A stretch of DNA of 64,000 bases, from NCBI RefSeq assembly GCF_044704955.1, contig NC_091984.1:143654001-143718000 (forward strand), given 5' to 3'. Origin of the DNA: Pristiophorus japonicus. Its lineage: Eukaryota. Under the pieces are notes generated by a model. The model saw nothing but the letters and a program-made list of their open reading frames with translations, made no database searches and was not told the origin of the DNA. This document shows positions 3,067 through 64,000 of this stretch, piece after piece (within the stretch, counting starts at the first letter, position 1; each line of letters opens with the position of its first letter). The translations under genes and the position numbers were made by a program.

Positions 3067-6000
3067 CAGGGGTAGATGTGTGGACCGTCGGCGAGAGATG
3101 ACAGTCCGGGGTCGAGGAGGCCTATAAAGGCCGCAAGATCAGGAATCGGGCAGCGTCGAAGAGAGGCGACAGTCCGGGGTCAGCGAGAGGCCAAGAAAGG
3201 CCGCAAGATCAGGAGTCGGGCAGCATCGGAGAGAGGTGACAGTCCGGGGTCAGCGAGAGGCCTATAAAGGCCGCAAGATCAGGAGTCGGACAGCGTCGGA
3301 GAGAGGTGACAGTCCGGGGTCAGTGAGAGGCCTATAAAGGCCCGGCTTGTACAGCTACAGGGAGAAGGCAAAAAAGAAGTAGAAAGAAATAGAAAGGTGA
3401 TGTCACAGCCAAGTGAGCAAGTGTTTGGCTGGTGATTGGTTCTTATTTCTCTTCTATATCAGTGAGTAACTTTTAGCATTATTGTTGCCAATTTAGTTTA
3501 ATCTAAGGGTTAAGTCATGGCAGGAGAGCTCGGCCACGTGTTATGCTCCTCGTGTACTATGTGGGAAATCAGGGACGCCTTCGGTGTCCCTGACGACTAT
3601 GTGTGCGGGAAGTGTATCTGCCTCCAGCTCCTGACAGACCGCGTTGCAGAATTCGAGCTGAAGGTGGATTCACTCTGGAGTGATGACGTGAATAGCACGT
3701 TTAGTGAGTTAGTCTACCCCAGGTAAAGGGTCCACAGCCAGATAGGGAATGGAAAACCAACAGGAAGAGTAGTGCAAGGAAAGTAGTGCAGGGATCCCCT
3801 GCGGTCATCCCCCTGCAAAACAGATACACCGCTTTGAGTACTGTTGAGGGGGATGACTCATCAGGGGGGAACAGCAGCAGCCAAGTTCATGGCACCATGG
3901 CTGGCTCTGCTGCACAGGAGGGCAGGAAAAAGAGTAGGAGAGCGATAATGATAGGGGATTCAATTGTATGGGGAATAGATCGGCGTTTCTGCGGCCGCAA
4001 CTGAGACTCCAGGATGGTATGTTGCCTCCCAGGTGCAAGGGTCAAGGATGTCTCACAGCGGGTGCAGGACGTTCTGAAAAGGGAGGGTGAATAGCCAGTT
4101 GTCATGGTGCACATTGGTACCAACGATATAGGTAAAAAACGGGATGAGGTCTTACGAGACGAATTTAAGGAGCTAGGAGCTAAATCAAAAAGTAGGACCT
4201 CAAAAGTAGTAATCTCGGAATGGCTACCAGTGCCACGTGTGAATCAGAGTAGGAATTGCAGGATAGCTCAGATGAATACGTGGCTTGACCAGTGGTGCAG
4301 CAGGGAGGGATTCAAATTCCTGGGGCATTGGAACCGGTTCTGGGGGAGGTGGGACCAGTACAAACCGGACGGTCTGCACCCAGGCAAGACTGGAACCAAG
4401 GTCCTAGGAGGAGTGTTTGCTCGTGCTGTTGGGGAGGAGTTAAACTAATATGGCACGAGGGTGGGAACCAATACAGGGAGACAGAGGGAAACAAAATGGA
4501 GACAGAAGCAAAAGACAGAAAGGAGATGAGTAAAAGTGGAGGGCAGAGAAACCCAAGGCAAAAAACAAAAAGGGCCACTTTGCAGCAAAATTCTAAAGGG
4601 TCTAAGTGTGCTAAAAAGGCAAGCCTGAAGGCTCTGTGCCTCAATGTGAGGAGTATTCGGAATAAGGTGGACGAATTAACTGTGCAGAGAGCAGTTAACG
4701 GAAATGATGTGGTTGGCATCACGGAGACATGGCTCCAGGGTGACCAAGGCTGGGAACTCAACATCCAAGGGTATTCAACATTTAGGAAGGATAGACAGAA
4801 AGGAAAAGCAGGCAGGGTGGCATTGCTGGTTAAAGAGGAAATTAATGCAATTTTAAGGAAAGACATTAGCTTGGATGATGTGGAATCGGTATGGGTGAAG
4901 CTACGGAGTACCAAGGGGGAGAAAACGTTAGTGGGAGTTGTGTACAGACCTCCAAACAGTAGTAGTGATGTTGGGGAGGGCATCAAACAGGAAATTAGGA
5001 GTGCATGCAATAAAGGTGCAGCAGTTATCATAGGTGACTTTAATATGCACATAGATTGGGCTAACCAAACTGGAAACAATACGGTGGAGGAGGATTTCCT
5101 GGAGTGCATAAGGGATGGTTTTCTAGACCAATATGTCGAGGAACCAACTAGTGGGGAGGCCATCTTAGACTGGGTGTTGTACAATGAGAGAGGATTAATT
5201 AGCAATCTCGTTGTGCGAGGCCCCTTGGGGAAGAGTGACCATAATATGGTGGAATTCTACATTAGGATGGAGAATGAAACAGTTAATTCAGAGACCATGG
5301 TCCAGAACTTAAAGAAGGGGAACTTTGAAGGTATGAGGCGTGAATTGGTGAGGATAGATTTGCGAATGATACTTAAGGGGTTGACTGTGGATGGGCAACG
5401 GCAGACATTTAGAGACCGCATGGATGAACTACAACAATTGTACATCTCTGTCTGGCGTAAAAATAAAAAAGGGAAGGTGGCTCAACCGTGGCTATCAAGG
5501 GAAATCAGGGATAGTATTAAAGCCAAGGAAGTGGCATACAAATTGGCCAGAAATAGCAGCGAACCCGGGGACTGGAAGAAATTTAGAACTCAGCAGAGGA
5601 GGACAAAGGGTTTGATTAGGGCAGGGAAAATAGAGTACGAGAGGAAGCTTGCAGGGAACATTAAAATGGACTGCAAAAGCTTCTATAGATATGTAAAGAG
5701 AAAAAGGTTAGTAAAGGCAAACGTAGGTCCCCTGCAGTCAGGGGAATTCATAACTGGGAACAAAGAAATGGCAGACCAATTGAACAAGTACTTTGGTTCA
5801 GTATTCACTAAGGAGGACCTTTATATACATTCCGGATATAAAAGGGGTCAGAGGGTCTAGTAAGAAGGAGGAACTGAGGGAAATCCTTATTAGGCGGGAA
5901 ATTGTGTTAGGGAAATTGATGGGATTGAAGGCCGATAAATCCCCAGGGCCCTGATGGTCTGCATCCCAGAGTACTTAAGGAGGTGGCCTTGGAAATAGCG

Positions 6001-18472: not shown

Positions 18473-21400
18473 TGTCAGGTTCTGCGAAACCAACCACGGA
18501 AACATGTGGCAGGGAGAATGGGAAGATGCCATGTTTAAAATGACCAACTGCAGCCAACAGCCTGTAAACCGCGGAGGATGATGGGACTCTGGCCACCCTG
18601 TACAGTAACAGACCATGTTGCATGGGCACGGAACTGGACGGGGGATGAGCCAGCTACCATGGGGGGAGAGGAGTGTACATTTGGTTCTTCCAGGAAAATG
18701 GATACAAGGCAACTTTATATTTTGAAAGGACATTTCTCCAGCTTTTTGTGTAAAAACCTCACTGAAGAGGCAACATGTCCAGGCAAAATCTCCCCAGTAA
18801 TACACAAGGCAACAGAATGGGTATCATTTGAATAATTAAACAAAGGCCCACAGGTCTGATGCAATCATTTTGGCCAGCTCAGACAGAGTGGCACATCTGT
18901 CGAGATAGTTAACAATCATCTTCATTCACCCCATCAGCGAGCGACAGGATACAGGAGGTGTGGCTAATCTCCCATTCCAGACAGATCGATACACATCGAA
19001 CTGCCATTCACACCCCATTTTATTCAAGGAAGACCCAAGACAATGGCACGAAGATGAACGGACGATACGAAAAGCTGCAAAAACACACAAGGGTTGTTGG
19101 AGGTTGGGGTCGGAGATTGGAGGTGTTAGAGGTTGGGGGTTGGAGGTTGGAGGTTTTAGATGTTGGAGGTTGGAGGTTGGAGTCAGCTTTTGCATTGAGT
19201 TGTAGAGTTGAGTTAAGAAGGTGGGAGTCAGTTTTCGTTGTGGATAAGTTGAGTTAAAGGGGAGTTGAGTCAGCTCTTCACAGGGCCCTCGCTCTGGGGA
19301 AAGTGTGCTTAACTCCAGCAGCTTTTTGCTTAGGAGGGCATCAAACAGTAAATTAGGGGTGCATGCAATAAAGGTGCAGCAATTATCATGGGTGACTTTG
19401 AAATGCATATAGATTGGGCTAACCAAACTGGAAGCAATACGGTGGAGGAGGATTTCCTGGAGTGCATAAGGGATGGTTTTCTAGACCAATATGTCGAGGA
19501 ACCAACGAGGGGGAAGGCCATCTTAGACTGGGTGTTGTGTAATGAGAGAGGATTAATTAGCAATCTCGTTGTGCGAGGCCCCTTGGGGAAGAGTGACCAT
19601 AATTTGGTGGAATTCTACATTAGGATGGAGAATGAAACAATTAATTCAGAGACCATGGTCCAGAACTTAAAGAAGGGTAACTTTGAAGGTATGAGGCGTG
19701 AATTGGCTAGGATAGATTGGCGAATGATACTTAATGGGTTGATAGTGGATGGACAATGGCAGACATTTAGAGACCGCATGGATGAACGACAGCAATTATA
19801 CATCCCTGTCTGGCGTAACAATAAAAAAGGGAAGGTGGCTCAACCGTGGCTATCTAGGGAATTCAGGGGCAGTATTAAAGCCAAGGAAGTGGCATACAAA
19901 TTGGCCAGAAATAGCAGCGAACCCGGGGACTGGGAGAAATTTAGAACTCAGCAGAGGAGGACAAAGGGTTTGATTAGGGCAGGGAAAACAGAGTACGAGA
20001 GGAAGCTTGCAGGGAACATTAAGACGGACTGCAAAAGCTTCAATAGATATGTAAAGAGAAAAAGGTTAGCAAAGACAAACGTAGGTCCCCTGCAGTCAGA
20101 ATCAGGGGAAGTCATAACTGGGAACAAAGAAATGGCAGACCAATTGAACCAAGTATTTTGGTTCGTTAATCACTAAGGAGGACACAAACAACCTTCCGGA
20201 TATAAAAGGGGTCAGAGGGTCTAGTAAGAAGAAGGAACTGAGGGAAATCCTTATTCGTCGGGAAATTGTGTTGGGAAAATTGATGGGATTGAAGGCCGAT
20301 AAATCCCCAAGGTCTGATGGTCTGCATCCCAGAGTACTTAAGGAGGTGGCCTTGGAAATAGCGGATGCATTGACAGTCATTTTCCAACATTCCATAGACC
20401 TGGATCAGTTCCTATGGAGTGGAGGGTAGCCAATGTAACCCCACTTTTTAAAAAAGGAAGAAAAGAGAAAACAGGGAATTATAGACTGATCAGCCTGGTA
20501 TCGGTAGTGGGTAAAATGATGGAATCAATTATTAAGGATGTCATAGCAGCGCATTTGGAAAGAGGTGACATGATAGGTCCAAGTCAGCATGGATTTGTGA
20601 AAGGGAAATCATGCTTGACAAATCTTCTGGAATTTTTTGAGGATGTTTCCAGTAGAGTGGACAAGGAGGAACCAGTTGATGTGGTGTATTTGGACTTTGA
20701 GAAGGCTTTCGACAAGGTCCCACACAAGAGATTAATGTGCAAAGTTAAAGCACGTGGGATTGGGGGTAGTGTGCTGACGTGGATTAAGAACTAGTTGGCA
20801 GACAGGAAGCAAAGAGTAGGAGTAAATGGGTACTTTTCAGAATGGCAGGCAGTGACTAGTGGGGTACCGCAAGGTTCTGTGCTGGGGCCCCAGCTGTTTA
20901 CATTGTACATTAATGATTTAGACGAGGGGATTAAATGTAGTATCTCCAAATTTTCGGATGACATTAAGTTGGGTAGCAGTGTGAGCTGCGAGGAGAATGC
21001 TATGAGGCTGCAGAGTGACTTGGATAGGTTTGTTGAATGGGCAAATCCATGGCAGATGAAGTATAATGTGGATAAATGTGAGGTTATCCACTTTGGTGGT
21101 AAAAACAGAGAGACAGACTATTATCTGAATGGTGACAGATTAGGAAAAGGGGAGGTGCAACGAGACCAGGGTGTCATGGTACGTCAGTCATTGAACGTTG
21201 GCATGCAGGTACAGCAGGCGGTTAAGAAAGCAAATGGCATGTTGGCCTTCATAGCGAGGGGATTTGAGTACAGGGGCAGGGAGGTGTTACTACAGTTGTA
21301 CAGGGCCTTGGTGAGGCCACACCTGGAGTATTGTGTACAGTTTTGGTCTCCTGGCTTGAGGAAGGACATTGTAGCGATTGAGGGAGTGCAGCGAAGGTTC

Positions 21401-22358
21401 AACAGACTGATTCCCGGGACTGACATATCAAGAAAGTCTGGATCAACTGGGCTTGTATTCACTGGAGTTCAGAAGAATGAGAGGGAATCTCATAGAAACA
21501 TTTAACATTCTGATGGGTTTAGACAGGTTTGATGCAGGAAGAATGTTCCCAATTTTGGGGAAGTCCAGAGCCAGAAGTCACAGTCTAAGGATAAGGGGTA
21601 AGCCATTTAGGACCGAAATGAGAAGAAACATCTTCACCCAGAGAGTGGTGAAGCTGTGTAATTCTCTGCCACAGAAAGTTGTTGAGGCCAATTCACTAAA
21701 TATATTCAAAAAGGAGTTAGATGTAGTCCTTACGACTAGGGGGATCAAGGGGTATGGCGAGAAAGCATGAATGGGGTACTGAAGTTGCATGTTCAGCCAT
21801 GAACTCATTGAATGGCGGTGCAGGCTCGAAGGGCCGAAGGGCCGACTCCTGCACCTATTTTCTACGTTTTTATGTTTCTATGAGCCAACCGAGAGGCAAC
21901 CGACGCAACATCGAGGAGGAAAACCGAACCGACCAACAACGTAAAACCCACTCCAGTGGGACCCCGAGCTGAAATAAGTGACCCCAGAACCCCAGAGTTG
22001 ATAGGATTGTGAGTGTAGCCCAAACCCCCTCACAGACACAATTTAGGACAGGAATTGGTAAGACGGGTGGAAGTGGGAGGTGGGGTTGTGTGTGGGTGGA
22101 ATGTTTCAACCTCTTATCTTCCCCTTCCCTGTTGCGAGAATTTTTTGTGTTGTTGAGTGAGATTGTGCCATTACTGCTATTTACGACCTCTTCCTATGCC
22201 CTCTATCTTTGTGTTTACTATTCTAAATAAACAACATAGCCATTTTGTACTCTTACCCACTGTGTCTGGTGCCTCGTTATTCACCCATCCTCATAAATCG
22301 CACGAACAGAACCTCAGGGGAGTGTGGATTCGAACCCACACCCCAAGCTCCCTTTACA
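18473..22358 (+). mobile_element. Long (~1.3 kb) LTR split by a CR1 insertion
   Basis: Begins TGTCAGG and ends CCCTTTACA, with AATAAA near 22225. The distal part shares motifs with the LTR at 36829-38359. Confidence 0.55.
19331..21882 (+). mobile_element. 5'-truncated CR1 LINE (APE end, RT, 3' UTR)
   Basis: ORFs 19388-20176, 20414-20794, 20795-21505 and 21453-21770; (TTTCTATG)-type tail. Confidence 0.93.
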
Positions 22359-43367: not shown

Positions 43368-46300
43368 TATTATTTATGTATACTTGTATTTACTCTGTAC
43401 AGCCATCAGAGGGCTCATCCCCTGGAGTCCCAAAGGATCCCATAATCTCTTGGGAGCACAGGTATTTAAGGAGGCTTCACAGGTTAGAGAGGCACTCTGG
43501 AGACCTGCAATAAAAGACTACGGTCACACTTTACTTTGAGCTCACTGTTCAGTCTGACTCTTTCTCCATACACAACAACTGACGACGAGATACAGATAGT
43601 GAACCCAAAGATGCAGAGAACAGTGGGCATCCTGGAGAAATTCTCGGAGGAAGATGTTTGGAAAACTTTTGTGGAGTGACTCAACAAATATTTCGTGGCC
43701 AATGAGCTAGATGGGGAAGAGAGCACTGCCAAACGAAGGGCGAAACTCCTCACCATCTGTGGGGCACCAACTTATGGCCTCATGAAGAATCTGCTCACTC
43801 CAGCGAAACCCACGGAAAAATCATACGCCAATTTGTGCATACTGGTCCGAGAGCATTTGAACCCAAAGGAAAGCATTCTGATGCTGAGTTATCGGTTCTA
43901 CACCTGCAAAAGGTCTGAAGGCCAGGAAGTGGTGAGTTATGTCGCCGAGCTAAGACGCCTTGCAGGACATTGCGAATTTGAAGGACATTTGGAGCACATG
44001 CGCAGAGACTTTTTCATATTTGGGATTGGCTATGAAACCATACTTCGCAAACTTTTGACTGTAGAGACCCCAACCTTAATTAAGGGCATAGCGATAGCCC
44101 AGGTGTTCATTGCCATCAATGACAATAGGAAGCAAATCTCTCAGCACCAAATTGCTGCTACAAATACAGTGAACAAACTGATTTGTTTTTGAATCATAAC
44201 GTACAGGGCAGGTCACACATACCTGCAGCTACATGACCGCAGATGTCTCAGAGTCCACCATCAAGGGTGATGAGTGCAAGCTATTAACACCTTGTTGGCG
44301 CTGCGGGGGTGATCATCACTTCTATTCATGCCGATTCAAAGACTACGTTTGCAGGGAATGTAGTACAATGGGACGCCTCCAACGAGTGTGCAGGTGAGCT
44401 GCAAAGCCTGTTAAATCTGCAAACCACCAGAGGAGGACAGATCCACACAGGGTCACGACGAACCAGAGCCTCAGATCGAGGAGGCAGAGGTACATAGGGT
44501 GCACACATTCATCACGAATTGTCCCCCGATAATGCTGAATGTTGAACTAAATGGACTCCCGGTCTCAATGGAGCTGGACACGGGCATGAGCCAGTCCATC
44601 ATGCGCAAAATGACTTTCAAAAAGTTGTGGTGCAACAAGGCCTCGAGGCCAGTCTTAACTCCAGTTCGCACGAAACTAAGAACTTGCACGAAAGAACTGA
44701 TTCCTGTAATCGGCAGTGCTACCATAAAGGTCTCCTACGATGGAGCGGTGCAAAAGCTACCACTCTGGGTGGTACCGGGCGATGGTCCCACGCTGCTCAG
44801 CAGGAGCTGGCTGCGAAAGATACGCTGGAACTGGGATGACGTCCGAGTGCGATCGCCCGCTGACGACACTTCGTGTGCCCAGGTCTTAAACAAATTTTCT
44901 TCTCTGTTTAAACCATTCATCGGGAAATTCCAAGGATCAAAAATGCAGATCCACCTAATTCCGGCGGCACAACCCATCCATCACAAGGCGAGAGCAGTAT
45001 CGTACAAGGGTAGAGATTGAGCTAGACTGGCTGCAAAGAGAGGGCATCATTTCGCGGATCGAGTTCAATGAGTGAGCCAGTCCTATCATCCCAGTCCTCA
45101 AGGGAAATGGCACCGTCAGAATCTGTGGCGAATGACAAAGTAACTATCAATTGTTTCTCCCTGCAGGACCAATAGCTACTACCAAAGGCTGCCGACCTCT
45201 TTGCAATGCTGGCGGGAGGAAAGACGTTCACAAAGCTGGATCTGACTTCAGCCGACATGACGCAGGAACTGGAGGAATCATCGAAGGCCCTCACCTGCAT
45301 TAACATGCACAAAGGTCTTTTTGTTTATAACAGATGCCCGTTTGGAATCCGATTGTCGGCAGCGCTATTCTAGAGAAACATGGAAAGCTTACTGAAGTCA
45401 ATCCCGCACACCGTGGTCTTCCAGGATGACATCTTGGTCACGGGTCGGAACACAGTCAAGCACCTGCAGAACATGGAGGAGGTTCTTAGTCGACTCAACC
45501 GCATGGGGCTCAGGTTAAAACGCTCAAAGTGCATTTTCCTGGTGCCTGAAGTGGAGTTCCTGGGAAGAAGGATTGCGGCGGACAGCATCAGGCCCACCAG
45601 CGCGAAGACGGAGGCAATCGAGAACACACTGAGGCCGCAGAATGTGACGGAGCTGCGGTTGTTTCTGGGACTCCTGAACTACTTTGGTAACTTCTTACAG
45701 GATCTCAGCACACTGTTAGAACCACTGTATGTCTTACTACGAAAAGGGGATGAATGGGTTTGCGGCAAAAGCCAAGAAAATGCCTTTGTAAAAGCGAGAA
45801 AATTGCTATGCTCAAACAAATTGCTTGTGTTGTATGATCCATGTCAGCGTTTGGTACTAGCATGTGACGCGTCGTCAGATGGCGTCGGGTATATATTGCA
45901 ACAAGCTAATGATTTCGGGAAAATGCAACCAGTTGCTTTTGCATCCAGATGTCTGTCTGAGGCTGAGAGAGCCTACAGCATGATTGAGAAAGAAACGTTA
46001 GCGTGTGCATATGTGGTAGAGCAAATGCATCAATATCTGTTTGGGATAAAATTTGAATTGGAAACTGACCATAATTCACTTATATCGCTGTTTTCCGAGA
46101 GAAAAGGGATAAATACCAACACATCGGCCTGCATCCAGAGATGGGCGCTTATGTTGTCCGCATACAACTTCGCCATCCGCCACAGGCCAGCCACAGAAAA
46201 CTGCGCCGATGCTTTCAGCAGGCTGCCATTGGCCACCACAGGGATGGAATTGGCACAGCCCGCAGATCTAGGCATGGGTATGGAACCATTTGAGAGTGAG

Positions 46301-47892
46301 CAATCACCCATCACTGCCCGACAGATCAAAACCTGGACAAGCCAGGACCCCTTATTATCTCTAGTCAAAAGCTGTGTGCTTCACGGGAGCTGGTCCATTG
46401 TCCCAGTGGAAATGCAGGAAGAGATAAAGCCTTTCCAGCGGCGCAAAGATGAAATGTCTATATATGCAGACTGCCTTCTGTGGGACAATCAAGTAGTGGT
46501 CCCCAAGAAGGGCAGAGACACCTTCATCAATGACCTCCACTGTACCCACCCGAGCATTGTAATGATGAAGGCGATAGCCAGATCCCACGTGTGGTGGCCC
46601 GGTATCGATGTGGACTTAGAGTCCTGCGTTCACAGATGTAACACATGCTTGGAGTTAAGCAATGTATCCAGGGAGGTGCCGCTAAGTTTATGATCTTGGC
46701 CCTCCAAACCATGGTCTAGAGTACACATTGACTATGCAGGCCTGTTCTTGGGTAAAATGTTCCTTTGAGGTTGAAGAGCGTACTCCAAGTGGATTGAATG
46801 GGAGATAATTTCGGCTAGCACATCCGCTGCCACTACTGAAAGCCTGGGGGCCACCTTTGCCACACACGGCCTACCCAATGTGCTGGTGAGCGACAACGGG
46901 CCATGTTTTACCAGTGCTGAGTTCGAAGAATTCATGAGGGATCAAACATATCACATCTGCCCCGTTTAAACCAGCGTCCAATGCGCAGGCAGAGAGAGCA
47001 GTGCAAACCATCAAGCAAGGCTTGAAGAGGGTAACTCGCCCATCCCAAGTCCTGCTTAGCTACCGCACGGGACCCCACTCACTCACTGGGATCCCACCTG
47101 CTGAACGGCTCATGAAAAGAGCACTTAAGACAAGGCACTCGTTAGTTCACCCTGATCTACATGAACAGGTAGAGAGCAGGCTGGCTTCAACAAAGTACAC
47201 ACCGTGATAGCGCTAATGTGTCACGCGAGATTGAAATCAATGATCCTGTATTTGTATTAAATTATGGACAAGATCCCAAGTGGCTTTCCGTCACTGTCAT
47301 GGCCAAAAAGGAGAGCAGGGTGTTTCGCGTCAAACTTTCAAATGGACTCATTCAACAGAAACACTTGGACCAATCAAACTCAGATTCACGGACTATCCTG
47401 AGCAACCCACCTTGGACCCTACCGTTTTTGATCCCCCAACATACACATGAGGGGCAACCGGCACCACGGTTGACCATGAAGCAGAACCCATCATCCGCAG
47501 CAGCCCAGCAGGGCCCAACACACCAGGGCGCAGCTCAGCAAGGCCAGCTCCACAGCAGCCCAGTGAGGGCCCAACAAATGATTCAACACCAGCTTTCACA
47601 CCGAGATGATCAACCAGGGCAAGAAGGGCCCCAGATCGACTCACATTGTAAATAGTTACACTTTTGAATTTGGGGGGAGTGTTGTTATATATGTATACTT
47701 GTATTTACTCTGTACATCCACCAGAGGGCTCATCCCCTGGAGTCCCAAGGGATCCCATAATCCCTTGGGAGCGCAGGTATTTAAGGAGGTTTCACAGGTT
47801 GGAGAGGCACTCTGGAGACGTGCAATTAAAGACTAAACTCACACTTTACTTTGAGCTCAGTGTTCAGTCTAACTTTTTCTCCATACACAACA
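43368..47892 (+). mobile_element. Ty3/Gypsy LTR retrotransposon, complete structure but degenerate
   Basis: ~210-bp LTRs at 43368-43577 and 47683-47892, PBS-like TGACGACGAG, PPT GGGGGGAG; gag, PR (ELDTG), RT (FQDD), single RNase H (LACDAS) and IN (WWPGI, SDNGP). Confidence 0.92.
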
Positions 47893-48467
47893 CAGATCCT
47901 TACTGAAAAGCCACACTCAACCTCATCCTGCAGTGCCAATCCTCACATCCCCATCACTCTACCTTCCCTAATCCTGCACTTCCTTACTCACACCAACTTA
48001 GCTTGCACCTCCACTCATCCCCTCTCTCTATCTCCATTATCACATCCCTTTCTCACCAGCCACCCCTCACACTCACCCTCACCTCATCCAATCATACCAA
48101 CTAAGCACACAAGGGTAGGCACTTGGCTCTTTTAGCCAAATAGTAAATCTTTATTTTTAACATGTTGCCTTCTTGGACAGTGGAAGTGTCTCAGTGAGTT
48201 GCAGTGATTAGCGAGACATAAAATTACCCCCGCAATCGTGCTGAGTGTGAAAGGAATGATTTGTGCATTGTAGGGGTACTGTAGGGGTGCTGTTGTGGGG
48301 TGGTGCCAAACTGGTGCATCATGTGGCAGCCACAGTGCACAGTGTGAAGGGAAGTAAATGTGGCCACGGTGAGGGTATCCCTGGCCTTCCGGGCAGCAAT
48401 GTCTTCAGGTGCTGATGCCCCGTGTCCTGTGCAGCATCAGGTGATTACGGAGAATGTTGGTGCTGTG

Positions 48468-48902
48468 GTTGGTGTTGCTGGTGTGTCTGGTGCTGCTGGT
48501 GTGCCGGGTGATGCTGATGTGTCCGGTGATGCTGGTGTGTCTGGTGATGCTGGTGTGCCTGGTGATGCTGGTGTGCCTGGTGATGCTGGTGTGTCTGGTG
48601 ATGCTGGTGTGCCGGGTGATGCTGGTGTGCTGGGTGATGCTGGTGTGTCTGGTGCTGCTGGTGTGCTTGGTGCTGCTGGTTTGTCTGGTGATGCTGGTGT
48701 GTCTGGTGCTGCTGGTTTGCCTGGTGATGCTGGTGTGCCTGGTGATGCTGGTGTGTTTGGTGATGCTGGTGTGCCGGGTGCTGCTGGTGTGTCTGGTGAT
48801 GCTGGTGTGCCTGGTGCTGCTGGTGTGTCTGGTGATGCTGGTGTGCCTGGTGATGCTGGTGTGTCTGGTGCTGCTGGTGCGTCTGGTGATGCTGGTGTTG
48901 GG
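48468..48902. repeat. 9/18-bp minisatellite (GCTGGTGTGCCTGGTGAT)n
   Basis: About 24 units of 18 bp; open in several frames. Confidence 0.95.
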
Positions 48903-49129
48903 GCTGATCTTGGTGGGATTTTGAGGAACAAGGTGAGATTTTTTCAAGGGCACCGATGCGGATGGAATATCTGGCAGCTGAAGTTGAGATGACAGAAGCG
49001 ATCTGTCAATGGTGAGAGAGGTTGCTCCAAGGAGGTGCCAGTGAATAGAGAGTTTACTCCAAACACTTCCAACCAGCTTCAAGCTCAAATGTGTATTTCA
49101 AATCCTGAATGCTCCAGCTTCTGAGATTG

Positions 49130-53879: not shown

Positions 53880-54900
53880 TTCGGACAGCCGAATTTGAGA
53901 AGGACACTCTATAATCCCTCATGGTTGACAGAGTCGAAGGCCTTTGTGAAGTCAAAGAAGGCCATGTACAGAGGTTGATGCTGCTCCCTGCATCTCACTT
54001 GAAATTGATGTGTGGTGAAGACCATGTCTGTTGTGTCCCTTAGTGGGCAGAATCCACATTGTGACTCTGGAAGGAGCTCTTCAGCCATTGGGAGGAGACG
54101 ATTGAAGAGGATTCTTGCGATAATCTTTGCAGTGGCAGACAGCAGGGTAACTATTCTGTAATTACCGCAATCGGATTTGTCCCCTTTCTTGAAGATGATT
54201 TCGATCATGGCTTCTCTGAGATCCCCAGGCATGCTCTCCTCCTTCCAGATAAGAGAGATGAGGTCATGGATTTGCGTCAAGAGTACTTCTCCGCCATGCT
54301 TTAGTACTTCGGCGAGGATTCCATCTGCTCCTGAGGCCTTGTTATTCTTCAGTTGTTGGATGGCCTTTTCATCCTCATGCCGGGCTGGGATTGTGCTGAG
54401 GTGGTGGTGGGCAGCTTGCTGTGGGATGGAGTCAAGGACACTCTCATCAAAGACATATCCTTGGTTGAGGAGATCCTCGAAGTGCTCCTTCCAGCAGGCA
54501 CTGACTGCATCTCTGACCTTGATGAGCACTCCTCCATTCTTAGCTCTCAGTGCAGTAGGACCTCAGTGCTTGGGCCATAGGTGGTCTTGATGTGCTAAAA
54601 AATCCACCCTCGTCGTGGTTGTCGAGTCGTTGCTGGATCTCCTGCACTTTTTCCACCCACCATCTGTTCTTTAGGTCACGAGTTTGTTGTTGGACTTCGG
54701 CCTTCAGTTGTCTATAGATCTGCTTTCTTTCTCTCGAGTTGTGGTGTTGTTTTCAATTCAAGAATGCCTTGCATTTACAGTTTATTAGCTCCTGGATCTC
54801 CTGGTCCTCCTCATCGAACCAGACTTGATGTTTCCTGGTCGAGTAACCAAGAGTTTCTTCACAGCTGCTAATTATTGTGCGCTTGAGGTCAGACCAGACT
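53880..54900 (-). mobile_element. RTE-clade LINE RT fragment
   Basis: KASGADGI.AE, FKKGDKSDCGNYR, ESQCGF and FFDFTKAFDSVN motifs. Confidence 0.85.
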
Positions 54901-55208
54901 GCCTAAGAAGAAGGATATTCAAGACGGAGATCGAAAGATTTTTGGATGTTAAGGGAATCAAGGGATACGGGGACAGTGCAGGAAAGTGGAGTTAATGTAG
55001 AAGGTGTGCCCTGATCTCATTGAATAGTGGAGCAGGCACAAGGGGCCGAATGGCCTACTCCTGCTCCAATTCTTTGGTTCTTATGTTCTTATGAACCATT
55101 GTTGCAGCTCCTGCACAGCGAGCTTCTGGGTCCAATGGCAATGGTGCCTCAGAGCCAGGGTGCCCCAGAGCGAGGGTGCCCCAGAGTGAGGGTGCCCCAG
55201 AGCCAGGA

Positions 55209-55448
55209 TTTTTTTTTTTTTAAATCCAATTTCGTTCCAGATCAACTCTAACGCCAAAGATCACTTTGCACCAATGTGTTTGATCTTAGGCCAAAAGGCC
55301 GAGAGGCGAAGTTGCACCGTTCCTGGAAATATTGCAATACCAGGTCGGTGCATGGAGTGGACGGGGCATGCCCCTGATCCAGCTCCCTGTCCAAAAATCA
55401 ATTCAATATCATGTCCCCAGAGAGGATATTAAACTGATAAGAACAGAT
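55209..55448 (-). mobile_element. U2 snRNA-derived SINE-like element B (U2 nt ~38 to end, second U2 5' stem, unique tail, poly(A))
   Basis: ATCTGTTCTTATCAGTTTAATATC...ATTTTTGG...ACCTGGTATTGCAATATTTCCAGGAACGGTGCAAC, then TCGCCTCTCGGCCTTTTGGCCTAAGATCAA, tail and A13. Confidence 0.85.
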
Positions 55449-55773
55449 TTTTTTTTTTTTTTTTAATTTTTCGTTGCCAATCTTTCCAATCCTTTGTCAA
55501 ATCACAAACGCCAGAGGTCACCTTGCACACATCAAGGATCACTCTGCGCCAATGCTCTTAGCCAAAAGGCCTAGAGCCACTGCACCGTTCCTGGAAGTAC
55601 TGCAATACCAGGTTCGTGCCATGGAGGTGGATGGGTCAAGCCACCCCACCCACCTCCTATTTCCAAAAAGCATAGGAGAACCACCTTCCTGATCCAGGGA
55701 GAGCCACTTTGGGGTCATGGTTATTCCCCTGTCAGGTCAGTTACGCATGATCTTAGCCAAAAGGCCGAGAAGT
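55448..55773 (-). mobile_element. U2/U1 chimeric SINE-like element A (U2 5', U1 5', U2 3' half, U2 5', tail, poly(A))
   Basis: CTTCTCGGCCTTTTGGCTAAGATCA; ACTGACCTGACAGGGGAATAACCATGA (U1-like); GATCAGGAAGGTGGTTCTCC (U1-like); ACCTGGTATTGCAGTACTTCCAGGAACGGTGCA; A17 tail. Confidence 0.85.
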
Positions 55774-56725
55774 GTGCCCCAGAGCCAGGATGCCCCAGAG
55801 CCAGGGTGACCAAGTGCGAGGGTGCCCCAGAGTGAGGGTGCCCCAGAGCCAGGGTTATCCCGAGCCAGGGTGCCCCAGAACCAGGGTGCTCCAGAGCCAG
55901 GGTGACCAAGTGCGAGGGTGCCCCAGAGTGAGGGTGCCCCAGAGCCAGGGTGCCCCAGAGCCAGGGTGCCCCACAGCCAGGGTGCCCTTGCTAGGGGTTT
56001 GGAGGAGTCGGCCTCCAGCACTGTGCGTGTCTCCCAGCACACCTTGCAGCCCATCCTTGGCAGCTTGCAAAGCATGGTGGGCTCGCAGAGAGAGGGTGGG
56101 GACCCAGAACTCACGCCACGTGTCACGGGGGAGGGAGCAGCAGCTATTGCAGCACAGGCTGGTGCAACGCAATCACTTACTGCTGTAATGGGCTCAGTGC
56201 TTGGTGGCATAAAGACTGGGTCTGCTCTCGTGCACGCTCAGTCCGCTCTCATGCATGCTCGGTCTGATCTAGTGCACGCTCGGTCTGCCCTCGTGCACGC
56301 TTGGGCTGCTCCCGTGCACACTCAGTCTGTTCCCGTGCACGCTCGGTCTGTTCCCGTGCACGCTCAGATCGATGCCATGCAAGCGCTGACTGCTGCCATC
56401 ATTTCTGGGTTCCCCGCAGTTCAACAGAGAGGTCATGGTGCCGAAGCAGGCCTGCAATCTGTGCTCGATGAGATTGGTCCGGATGCTGAGGCACTGAGGG
56501 GGAGTGGCAGTGGGTCGGTAGAAATGGAAGGTGTTGCCCTCTCTCAGGATATCAGCATTCCTCCCACCACTGCCACTTCACCATTGCAGTTGGCGCTGTC
56601 TGCACCCCAGCCGTCCGAGACTGCTGCTGCCCAGGCTGAGGTGGTGCAGAACTGGTCCAGGGCATCCTGCTAGGCCATGTACAGTCTCTGTATGGCATAC
56701 TGAGCAGCGGTGGGGGGGCGGGGTT

Positions 56726-59580: not shown

Positions 59581-62410
59581 TAGAAACATAGAAACATAGA
59601 AAATAGGTGCAGGAGTAGGCCATTCAGGCTTTCAAGCCTGCACCGCCATTCAATGAGTTCATGGCTGAACATGCAACTTCAATACCCCCTTCCTGCTTTT
59701 TCGCCATACCCCTTGATCCCCCGAATAGTAAGGACTACATCAAACTCCTTTTTGAATATATTTAGTGAATTGGCCTCAACAACTTTCTGTGGTAGAGAAT
59801 TCCACAGCTTCACCACTCTCTGGGTGAAGAAGTTTCTCCTCATCTCGGTCCTAAATGGCTTACCTCTTATCCTTCGACTGTGACCCCTGGTTGTGGACTT
59901 CCCCAACATTGGGAACATTCTTCCTGCATCTAACCTGTCTAAACCCGTCAGAACTTTAAATGTTTCTATGAGATCCCCTCTCATTCTTCTGAACTCCAGT
60001 GAATACAATCCCAGTTGATCCAGTCTTGATATGTCAATCCCGCCATCCCGGGAATCAGTCTGGTGAACCTTCGCTGCACTCCCTCAATAGCAAGAATGTC
60101 CTTCCTCAAATTAGGAGACCAAAACTGCACACAATACTCCAGGTGTGGCCTCACCAAGGCCCTGTACAACTGTAGCAACACCTCCTTGCCCCTGTACTTA
60201 AATCCCCTTGCTATGAAGGCCAACATGCCATTTGCTTTCTTAACCGCCTGCTGTACCTGCATGCCACCCTTCAATGACTGATGTACCATGACACCCAGGT
60301 CTCGTTGCACCTCCCCTTTTCCTAATCTGTCACCATACAGATAATAGTCTGTCTCTCTGTTTTTACCACCAAAGTGGATAACTTCACATTTATCCACATT
60401 ATGCTTCATCTGCCATGCATTTGCCCACTCACCTAACCTATCCAAGTCACTCTGCAGCCTCATAGCATCCTCCTCGCAGCTCACACTGCCACCCAACTTA
60501 GTGTCATTCGCAAATTTGGGGATACTACATTTAATCCCCTTGTCTAAATCATTAATGTACAATGTAAACAACTGGGGCACCAGCAAAGAACCTTGCAGTA
60601 GCCCACTAGTCACTGCCTGCCATTCTGAAAAGTACCCATTTACTCCTACTCTTTGCTTCCTGTCTGCCAACTAGTTCTCAATCCACGTCAGCATATTACC
60701 CCCAATCCCATGTGCTTTAACTTTGCACATTAATCTCTTGTGTGGGACCTTGTCGAAAGCCTTCTGAAAGTCCAAATACACCACATCAACTGGTTCTCCC
60801 TTGTCCACTCCACTGGAAACATCCTTAAAAAATTCCAGAAGATTTGTCAAGCATGATTTCCCTTTCACAAATCCATGCTGACTTGGACCTATCATGTCAC
60901 CTCTTTCTAAATGCGCTGCTATGACATCCTTAATAATTGATTCCATCATTTTACCCACTACCAATACCAGGCTGACCAGTCTATAATTCCCTGTTTTCTC
61001 TTTCCCTCCTTTTTTAAAAAGTGGGGTTACATTGGCTACCCTCCACTCCATAGGAACTGATCCAGAGTCAATGGAATGTTGGAAAGTGACTGTCAATGCA
61101 TCCGCTATTTACAAGATCACCTCCTTAAGTACTCTGGGATGCAATCTATCAGGTCCTGGGGATTTATCGGCCTTCAATCCCATCAATTTTCCCAACACAA
61201 TTTCCGGACTAATAAGGATTTCCCTCAGTTCCTCCTTCTTACTTGACCCTCTGACCCCTTTTATATCCGGAAGGTTGTTTGTGTCCTCCTTAGTGAATGC
61301 CGAACCAAAGTACTTGTTCAATTGGTCTGCCATTTCTTTGTTCCCTGTTATGACTTCCCCTGATTCTGACTGCAGGGGACCTACATTTGTCTTTACTAAC
61401 CTTTTTCTCTTTACATATCAATAGAAGCTTTTGCAGTCCGTCTTAATGTTCCCTGCAAGCTTCCTCTCGTACTCTGTTTTCCCTGCCCTAATCAAATCCT
61501 TTGTCCTCCTCTGCTGAGTTCTAAATTTCTCCCAGTCCCCAGGTTCACTGCTATTTCTGGCCAATTTGTATGCCACTTCCTTGGCTTTAATACTATCCCT
61601 GATTTCCCTTGATAGCCACGGTTGAGCCACCTTCCCTTTTTTATTTTTATGCCAGACAGGGATGTACAATTGTTATAGTTCATCCATGCGGTTTCTAAAT
61701 GTCTGCCATTGCCCATCCACTGTCAACCCATTAAGTATCATTCGCCAATCTATCCTAGCCAATTCACGCCTCATACCTTCAAAGTTACCCTTCTTTAAGT
61801 TCTGGACCATGGTCTCTGAATTAACTGTTTCATTCTCCATCCTAATGTAGAATTCCACCATATTATGGCCACTCTTCCCCAAGGGGCCTCGCACAACGAG
61901 ATTGCTAATGAATCCTCTGTCATTGCACAACACCCAGTTTAAGATGTCCTCCTCCCTAGTTGGTTCCTCGACATATTGGTCTCGAAATCCTTCCCTTCTG
62001 CACTCCAGGGAATCCTTCTCCACCGTATTGCTTCCAGGTTGGTTAGCCCAATCTATATGCATATTAAAGCCACCCATGATAACTGCTGCACCTTTATTGC
62101 ATGCATCCCTAATTTCCTGTTTGATGCCCTCCCCAACATCACTACTACTGTTTGGAGGTTTTTTGCCCTTTGGTGTTCTGCAGCTATACCCATATAGATT
62201 CCATATCATCCAAGCTAATGTCCTTCCTAACTATTGCATTAATCACCTCTTTAACCAGCAATGCTACTCTACCTCCTTTTCCTTTTATTCTATATTTCCT
62301 GAATGTTGAATACCCTTGGATGTTGAGTTCCCACCCCTGATCATCCTGGAGCCATGTCTCTGTAATCCCAATCACATCATATCTGTTAACATCTATTTGC
62401 AAAGTTAATT
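59581..62410 (-). mobile_element. CR1 LINE ORF2 (APE-RT) and 3' UTR
   Basis: Series of minus-strand ORFs with CR1 APE/RT motifs; tail at 59581. Confidence 0.93.
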
Positions 62411-64000
62411 CATAGAAACATAGAAACATAGAAAATAGGTGCAGGAGCAAGCTATTCAGCCCTTCTAGCCTGCACCGCCATTCAATGAGTTCATGGCTGA
62501 ACATGAAACTTCAGTACCCCATTCCTGCTTTCTTGCCATACCCCTTGATCCCCCCAGTAGTAAGGACTTCATCTAACTGCCTTTTGAATATATTTCGTGA
62601 ATTGGCCTCAAATACTTTCTGTGGTAGAGAATTCCACAGGTTCACCACTCTCTGGGTGAAGAAGTTTCTCCTCATCTCGGTCCTAAATGGCTTACCCCTT
62701 ATCCTCAGACTGTGACCTCTGGTTCTGGACTTCCCCAACATTGGGAACATTCTTCCTGCATCTAACCTGTCTAAACCCGTCAGAATTTTAAACGTTTCTA
62801 TGAGGTCCCCTCTCATTCTTCTGAACTCCAGTGAATACAAGCCCAGTTTATCCAGTCTTTCTTGACAGGTCAGTCCCACCATCCCGGGAATCAGTCTGCT
62901 GAATCTTCGCTGCACTCCCTCAATAGCAAGAATGTCCTTCCTCAAGTTAGGAGACCAAAACTGTACACAATACTCCAGGTGTGGCCTCACCAAGGCCCTG
63001 TACAACTGTAGCAACACCTCCCTGCCCCTGTACTCAAATCCCCTCGCTATGAAGGCCAACATGCCATTTGCTTTCTGAACCGCCTGCTGTACCTGCATGC
63101 CAAACTTCAATGACTGATGTACCATGACACCCAGGTCTCGTTGCACCTTCCCTTTTCCTAATCTGTCACCATTCAGATAATAGTCTGTCTCTCTGTTTTT
63201 ACCACCAAAGTGGATAACCTCACATTAATCCACATTATACTTCATCTGCCATGCATTTGCCCACTCACCTAACCTATCCAAGTCACTCTGCAGCCTAATA
63301 GCATCCTCCTCGCAGCTCACACTGCCACCCAACTTAGTGTCATCCGCAAATTTGGAGATACTACATTTAATCCCCTCGTCTAAATCATTAATGTACAATG
63401 TAAACAGCTGGGGCCCCAGCACAGAACCTTGCGGTACCCCACTAGTCACTGCCTGCCATTCTGAAAAGTACCCATTTACTCCTACTCTTTGCTTCCTGTC
63501 TGACAACCAGTTCTCAATCCACGTCAGCACACTACCTCCAATCCCATGTGCTTTAACTTTGCATATTAATCTCTTGTGTGGGACCTTGTCGAAAGCCTTC
63601 TGAAAGTCCAAATATACCACATCAACTGGTTCTTCTTTGTCTACTTTACTGGAAACATCCTCAAAAAATTCCAGAAGATTTGTCAAGCATGATTTCCCTT
63701 TTACAAATCCATGCTGACTTGGACCTATCATGTCACTATTTTCCAAATGCGCTGCTATGGCATCCTTAATAATTGATTCCATCATTTTACCCACTACTGA
63801 GGTCAGGCTGACCGGTCTATAATTCCCTGTTTTCTCTCTCCCTCCTTTTTTAAAAAGTGGGGTTACATTGGCTACCCTCCACTCGATAGAAACTGATCCA
63901 GAGTCAATGGAATGTTGGAAAATGACTGTCAATGCATCCGCTATTTCCAAGGCCACATCCTTAAGTACTCTGGGATGCAGTCCATCAAGCCCTGGGGATT
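62411..64000 (-). mobile_element. CR1 LINE nested in the APE of the previous copy; runs off the window
   Basis: Tail at 62411; ORFs 62511-63146 and 63225-63956 (GVPQGSVLGP, FADD). Confidence 0.93.

Follow-up and report, generated by a model that had tools for sequence, protein, structure and literature searches.

The 64-kb window, by which we mean the whole stretch of 64,000 nucleotides that was analysed, contains a composite of 565 nt, read on the minus strand from 55773 to 55209, which is best explained by an elasmobranch lineage of SINEU-like, non-autonomous retroposons, two copies of which lie nested one in the other at U2 nt 38/39; we give this reading a probability of roughly 0.6. The initial annotation of the locus had described the minus strand as U2, U1, U2, tail, A17, U2, tail and A13, and every one of these modules was found, in the order given. 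Added to that description are a second partial U1 copy, the homology of the two tails to each other and a duplication of ~ 26 nt within the inner tail. The upstream unit has a length of 326 nt (55773-55448) and the downstream unit of 239 nt, both being short and non-coding. The features are, in the reading direction of the composite:

55774-55790, minus-strand letters TCCTGGCTCTGGGGCAC: 5'-side copy of the likely target-site duplication, identical to 55192-55208; a T-variant minisatellite unit
55742-55773, minus: U2 snRNA nt ~ 4-35 (covers stem-loop I and enters the branch-site region), from the cmscan alignment
55697-55741, minus: probable U1 snRNA nt ~ 3-48 (5' splice-site region and stem-loop I), best Rfam family, weak
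55675-55696, minus: TG and a probable second partial U1 copy (~ nt 28-47), from local alignment and reading of the letters
55581-55674, minus: U2 3' part (~ nt 90-187, with Sm site and stem-loops III and IV) up to the U2 3' end, from cmscan
55553-55580, minus: hairpin of U2 nt 1-29 with which the inner core begins, adjoining the preceding U2 3' end
55465-55552, minus: inner non-snRNA tail, 88 nt, with the internal duplication of ~ 26 nt; matches no Rfam family
55448-55464, minus: poly(A) closing the upstream unit, an uninterrupted run of 17 A (A17), from the search for A/T runs
55311-55447, minus: U2 sequence that starts at nt 39 and runs to the U2 3' end, with the Sm site and stem-loops III/IV retained, Rfam 64.3 bits
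55280-55310, minus: hairpin of U2 nt 1-30 with which the outer core begins, aligned to U2 model positions 1-30; adjoins the preceding U2 3' end
55222-55279, minus: 58-nt outer tail of non-snRNA sequence, shown by tail-to-tail comparison to be homologous to the inner one
55209-55221, minus: poly(A) closing the downstream unit, an uninterrupted run of 13 A (A13), from the search for A/T runs
55192-55208: 3'-side copy of the likely target-site duplication, by sequence identity with the 5'-side copy
55141-55997: host minisatellite of 16 bp with a higher order of 96 bp, receiver of the composite, from repeat analysis

In a cmscan against Rfam, where the gathering score for U2 is 46 bits, two U2 matches exceeded this threshold, one at 55575-55776 with 66.3 bits and one at 55307-55471 with 64.3 bits. 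In the alignment of the former, U2 model positions 1-35 were matched and positions 36-38 were gapped; in the alignment of the latter, the U2 model resumed at position 39 after the A-run. The first 23 nt of this U2 39-188 part are canonical and the region of stem-loop II is shortened by a deletion at 55400-55425. For 55668-55743, U1 was the best Rfam family, albeit with weak scores of 13.6-15.4 bits (E 0.06-0.18) that lie below Rfam significance. The aligned part comprised U1 nt 1-48, with a high posterior probability over the first ~ 30 nt, and since these positions align well, we accept the sequence as a probable U1 5' piece. The two poly(A) stretches, A17 and A13, are the only A/T runs of at least 13 in the 64-kb window. 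Two U2 matches over the gathering score could also be left by a U2 gene cluster or by variant snRNA genes that had never been retroposed. This is hardly credible, because both matches are mosaic or truncated, lacking nt 36-38 or nt 1-38, and then run into poly(A), and because a duplication flanks them within a minisatellite. Functional or variant U2 genes are thus contradicted by the anatomy of the locus.

Of the joints, the one between the two units matters most. The 20 nt that follow A17, at 55428-55447, read TCTGTTCTTATCAGTTTAAT; they occur a single time in the 64-kb window and are identical in 20 out of 20 positions to the sequence that is given as the specific 3' target sequence of Keno (PMC6136364). 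Utopia, too, is followed by U2 sequence from nt 39 onward, and this sequence is identical to that behind Keno (PMC4640811). On the other side of the inserted unit, at 55742-55773, lies the complementary U2 5' part (nt ~ 4-35); to which element it belongs is ambiguous, since this leading U2 piece may be a part of the interrupted copy or the upstream element's own head. The inner joint shows no duplication between the units and U2 nt 36-38 are missing. Elements mobilised by LINEs are often 5'-truncated or inserted in tandem, and the outer copy attests to the use of sites other than U2; we therefore considered that a 5'-truncated copy of U2 plus core had met an unrelated insertion, or a random template jump, at nt 39 without any target-specific enzyme. 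However, each of the 20 nt at the joint agrees with the known target, the complementary 5' part of U2 sits upstream, there is no duplication between the units, and a random truncation or jump in an RNA of 188 nt would place the breakpoint at nt 38 or 39 by chance in only ~ 1 in 100 cases. A chance tandem is very improbable on these grounds and was rejected. From the exact target joint, its low probability by chance and the U2 5' part on the other side, we conclude that the composite records a site-specific integration into a U2-derived sequence, at the Keno/Utopia site; the joint with the U2 target that had been proposed before is thereby supported.

The upstream U2/U1 mosaic is devoid of U2 nt 36-92 and, therefore, offers no target; only the type with the full U2 head can be hit. 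The former idea that the elements insert into each other consequently holds for insertion into the unit with the full U2 head but not for insertion into the mosaic. Further, Utopia had been listed as an element of the Tx1 clade, which has to be corrected: it is an element with a restriction-like endonuclease and does not belong to Tx1 (PMC4640811).

A LINE with a poly(A) end was not found in the 64-kb window; the LINE fragments that are present are L2/CR1-like and have no poly(A) run. Reverse-transcriptase fragments of LINEs without poly(A) ends were seen at 53909-54760 (minus), 20795-21505 (plus), 59981-60670 (minus) and 63225-63956 (minus), the one at 53909-54760 being a 5'-truncated L2/CR1-like copy just downstream of the minisatellite on the minus strand. 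The composite is not inserted in a LINE ORF. Another LINE ORF, at 4292-5860 (plus), encodes an APE endonuclease domain (Pfam Exo_endo_phos); the named relatives of its protein are all from elasmobranchs (sawshark, skate, stingray, basking shark and catshark), with the best from Pristiophorus japonicus at 76-86% identity, which assigns the genome to the sharks and rays. Besides, the window contains a fragment of an LTR-retroelement pol (45380-46693, plus) with reverse transcriptase, RNase H and integrase zinc-binding domain, and a 210-aa ORF (48360-48992, plus) that matches the Pfam Collagen triple-helix repeat with an E-value of 2e-22; it may represent an exon of a collagen gene or else a GC-rich repeat read as protein.

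Both units end in the same core design, which consists of a U2 5' hairpin, a tail and poly(A), and in both a U2 3' end directly abuts U2 nt 1 of the hairpin (...GGTGCA at 55581 and ...GGTGCAAC at 55311). A LINE reverse transcriptase that jumps from template to template, end to end, would be expected to leave joints of this kind, of a U2 3' end to a U2 5' end. The tails are homologous, with ~ 84% identity over the aligned positions and with indels, and have a motif of 22 nt in common that is exact if three degenerate positions are allowed. Because they end in the same core with homologous tails, the two units are best regarded as subfamilies of one lineage, and the assignment to two separate families in the initial annotation was given up. 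The core hairpins differ from the leading U2 hairpin at several positions. Within the 64-kb window, no copies of either tail, of the U1 piece or of U2 39-92 were found beyond the composite itself, and the start of the tail, its conserved part, gave 0 matches when used as an exact pattern against the JGI metagenome contigs. An 80-aa open frame across the outer unit had no candidate in the protein collection, and the predicted folding of both cores was not stable beyond that of shuffled sequences (z -1.6 and -0.9). Runs of T4-T5 are present on the sense strand at five places and argue against transcription by pol III, as in SINEU.

The receiver of the composite is a minisatellite with the 16-bp consensus CCCTGGCTCTGGGGCA (minus strand), present in the segments 55141-55208 and 55774-55997. 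The direct repeat of 17 bp on both sides of the composite (55192-55208 and 55774-55790) is identical in 17 out of 17 positions. Since any two units of a 16-bp minisatellite look alike, such a repeat is weak evidence if taken alone. The two flanking units are, of all 18, the only ones that start with TCCTGG, the others starting with CCCTGG (minus strand), and removal of the insert together with one copy of the repeat restores the 16-bp phase. A true target-site duplication, which had been proposed from the restriction of CCAGGA to these two units, is likely because of the private T variant in both of them and the restored phase, but it is not proven. The entry point of the retroposon is the minisatellite's only T-variant unit. 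The duplication begins with TCC and is not A-rich, and the nick precedes the only unit that gives A/TC (the slash marks the nick), to be compared with A38/T39 C40 in U2. This resemblance was noticed post hoc and is a weak hint, suggestive only, of a sequence-selective endonuclease. Since the outer copy sits in the minisatellite and not in U2, U2 targeting is not strict: one of the two integrations at the locus is at the U2 site and the other is in the minisatellite, at the A/TC unit.

A model that accommodates these observations starts from a basic mobile unit that would comprise U2 nt 1-30 (stem-loop I), a non-snRNA tail of 60-90 nt and poly(A). The tail would serve as recognition end of a Tx1/Keno-type LINE and the U2 hairpin would be a trace left by insertion at the LINE's U2 target and subsequent transcription from a U2 promoter. 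At the 5' end of the core RNA, the reverse transcriptase would jump to the 3' end of another RNA, which may have been U2 or a U2-derived RNA for the downstream unit and the U2 3' part, then U1, for the upstream unit; the element would thereby gain snRNA sequence on its 5' side, as SINEU-1 and SINEU-2 of crocodilians have done. In a first event, a copy of the downstream type (full U2, core and A13) would have entered the minisatellite with a duplication of 17 bp, and its U2 head would have brought along an intact Keno/Utopia target. In a second event, a mosaic copy (U2 1-35, U1, U1, U2 3' part, core and A17) would have been inserted at U2 nt 38/39, with its 5' end either attached at nt ~ 35 or merged into the U2 5' piece homologous to it. 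A merger of this kind would be common among LINEs with a specific target if their RNA includes target sequence from upstream. We prefer nesting at this very locus, but it may instead have occurred in a source copy.

Several points weigh against nesting of two copies: it is seen at a single locus, the outer insertion lies outside U2, the U1 match is below significance, a repeat within a minisatellite is weaker evidence than a repeat usually is, and one flanking duplication would fit a composite made in one event, or copied as a unit, just as well. In the case of one event, a reverse transcriptase on the downstream core RNA (with A13) would have jumped, from the 5' end of this RNA, to the 3' end of a read-through transcript. 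The transcript, from a U2 gene or a U2-headed copy in which the mosaic was already present, would have been copied to its U2 5' end; the site-specific insertion at nt 38/39 would then have occurred at the source and not at the locus. Indeed, everything is enclosed by a single pair of repeats, the composite starts at U2 nt ~ 3-4, like a transcript from the U2 start site, the joint of U2 188 to U2 1 is end-to-end, and a disrupted U2 gene could decay and yet be transcribed, which fits the shortened stem-loop II. On the other hand, this history demands a jump onto a rare RNA instead of the abundant U2 snRNA, has a source locus that is not known and still has to include an insertion at the Keno site; we judge it to be unlikely, though it deserves to be kept in mind. 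A single flanking duplication would also be left if the composite of 565 nt had arisen once and now propagated as a unit, as a dimeric SINE family for which crocodilian SINEU-1D is a precedent (PMC4494074). In such a family, reverse transcription would often start from A17, a pure run inside the composite, and monomers would result; we consider this origin improbable. Whichever of the three histories applies, be it local nesting, one event or a dimeric family, each still needs one insertion at the Keno site.

The insertion looks young, since the flanking repeats are identical in 17 out of 17 positions and both A-runs are pure. Despite the perfect flanking repeats, stem-loop II is decayed and the core hairpins are diverged. 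It follows that the snRNA parts were inherited from a line of non-functional copies and not taken fresh from a working snRNA, which in turn favours a propagating family over one-off chimeras. A self-targeting, array-building system, as suggested in the initial annotation, is plausible but unproven. Taken one step further, jumps onto U2 RNA would put the U2 nt 38/39 target into each retrocopy, so that the LINE/SINE system would make its own landing pads, an idea we put forward tentatively and hold to be possible at best. If it was true, thousands of harmless targets could be spread through the genome, a site-specific retrotransposon would be freed from its dependence on a few essential U2 genes, and head-to-tail arrays could grow by repeated self-insertion.

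With its pure poly(A) stretches and perfect repeats, the composite would be a young elasmobranch counterpart that links SINEU-like elements to the Keno-type U2 site. Three propositions become testable on recent insertions: that the U2 hairpin of the core is a co-transcribed fragment of the target, that the snRNA heads are added by template jumps, and that these heads are new, harmless targets for a site-specific LINE. They bear on the question of how retrotransposons that are aimed at essential genes of low copy number persist.

Chimeras of the L1 type that arise by template switch (U6/L1 and snRNA-Alu; Buzdin 2002 and Garcia-Perez 2007, cited in PMC4494074) also have an snRNA 3' end joined to a poly(A) sequence, with one duplication around both. 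As far as they are described there, their partner is a randomly truncated LINE or mRNA, whereas both shark units have a full-length core from U2 nt 1; and they are one-off products, whereas the U2 part of the shark composite is already decayed, a sign of a lineage that propagates.

Keno (Tx1 clade, APE endonuclease) and Utopia (restriction-like endonuclease) have the same 3' junction as the shark insert, with U2 from nt 39 (TCTGTTCTTATCAGTTTAAT), and a variable 5' junction. As would be expected of a partner of a Keno/Tx1 LINE, poly(A) is followed by U2 from nt 39 (the 20-mer at 55428-55447) and a U2 5' part (nt ~ 4-35, of ambiguous ownership) is located upstream of the insert. Unlike these LINEs, the insert is non-coding with a length of only ~ 300 nt, and its target was a retroposed, U2-derived head and not a U2 gene. 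Utopia uses the same U2 site, but its reptile families make duplications of 20 bp, whereas the inner joint is without duplication and nt 36-38 are missing; from fishes, Utopia has not been reported (PMC4640811). The poly(A) tails and the outer duplication of 17 bp would fit Keno/Tx1 better than Utopia.

The closest likeness is to SINEU (SINEU-1 and SINEU-2), short poly(A) retroposons of crocodilians with U1/U2 heads, none of which was described outside crocodilians as of 2015 (PMC4494074, Kojima 2015). In the literature searched, we found no paper on SINEU or U2-derived SINEs in sharks. For SINEU, end-to-end template jumps were proposed to explain the repeated addition of U1/U2 at the 5' end, and Tx1-clade LINEs close to Keno, some of them with U1 or U2 heads, were proposed as drivers; all copies are old except for one family, and their transcription and the reason for the snRNA heads were left open (PMC4494074). 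Like SINEU-type elements, the shark composite has an snRNA-derived 5' region (two U2 matches over the gathering score and a weak U1 piece), poly(A) (A17 and A13), a short non-coding body and a repeat of 17 bp around the whole. The comparison with SINEU that had been made in the initial annotation is apt. The core of a short U2 5' piece and a non-snRNA tail, with further U1/U2 sequence added 5', follows the pattern of SINEU-1. The shark core is of the same design as SINEU-1J, the simplest SINEU, which consists of a short U2 5' piece and a non-snRNA tail. The head of the upstream unit recalls the order U1 then U2 in the head of SINEU-2, and the partial duplication of U1 has a parallel in SINEU-1G, where U1 is partially duplicated near TGG. 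More generally, the duplications in the U1 piece (55675-55741) and in the inner tail (55465-55552) resemble the partial duplications of SINEU-1 subfamilies. SINEU also includes a dimeric subfamily and has internal T-runs that argue against pol III, and the shark composite is likewise a double unit with T-runs. The two differ in their hosts, crocodilian versus elasmobranch, the likeness resting here on module architecture, and in their sites of insertion, since crocodilian SINEU prefer a Mariner transposon whereas the shark copy lies at U2 nt 38/39 inside another copy. In sum, the best reading of the sequence is that a SINEU-like family, published only for crocodilians, is present in an elasmobranch, where it would form a new, apparently young lineage.
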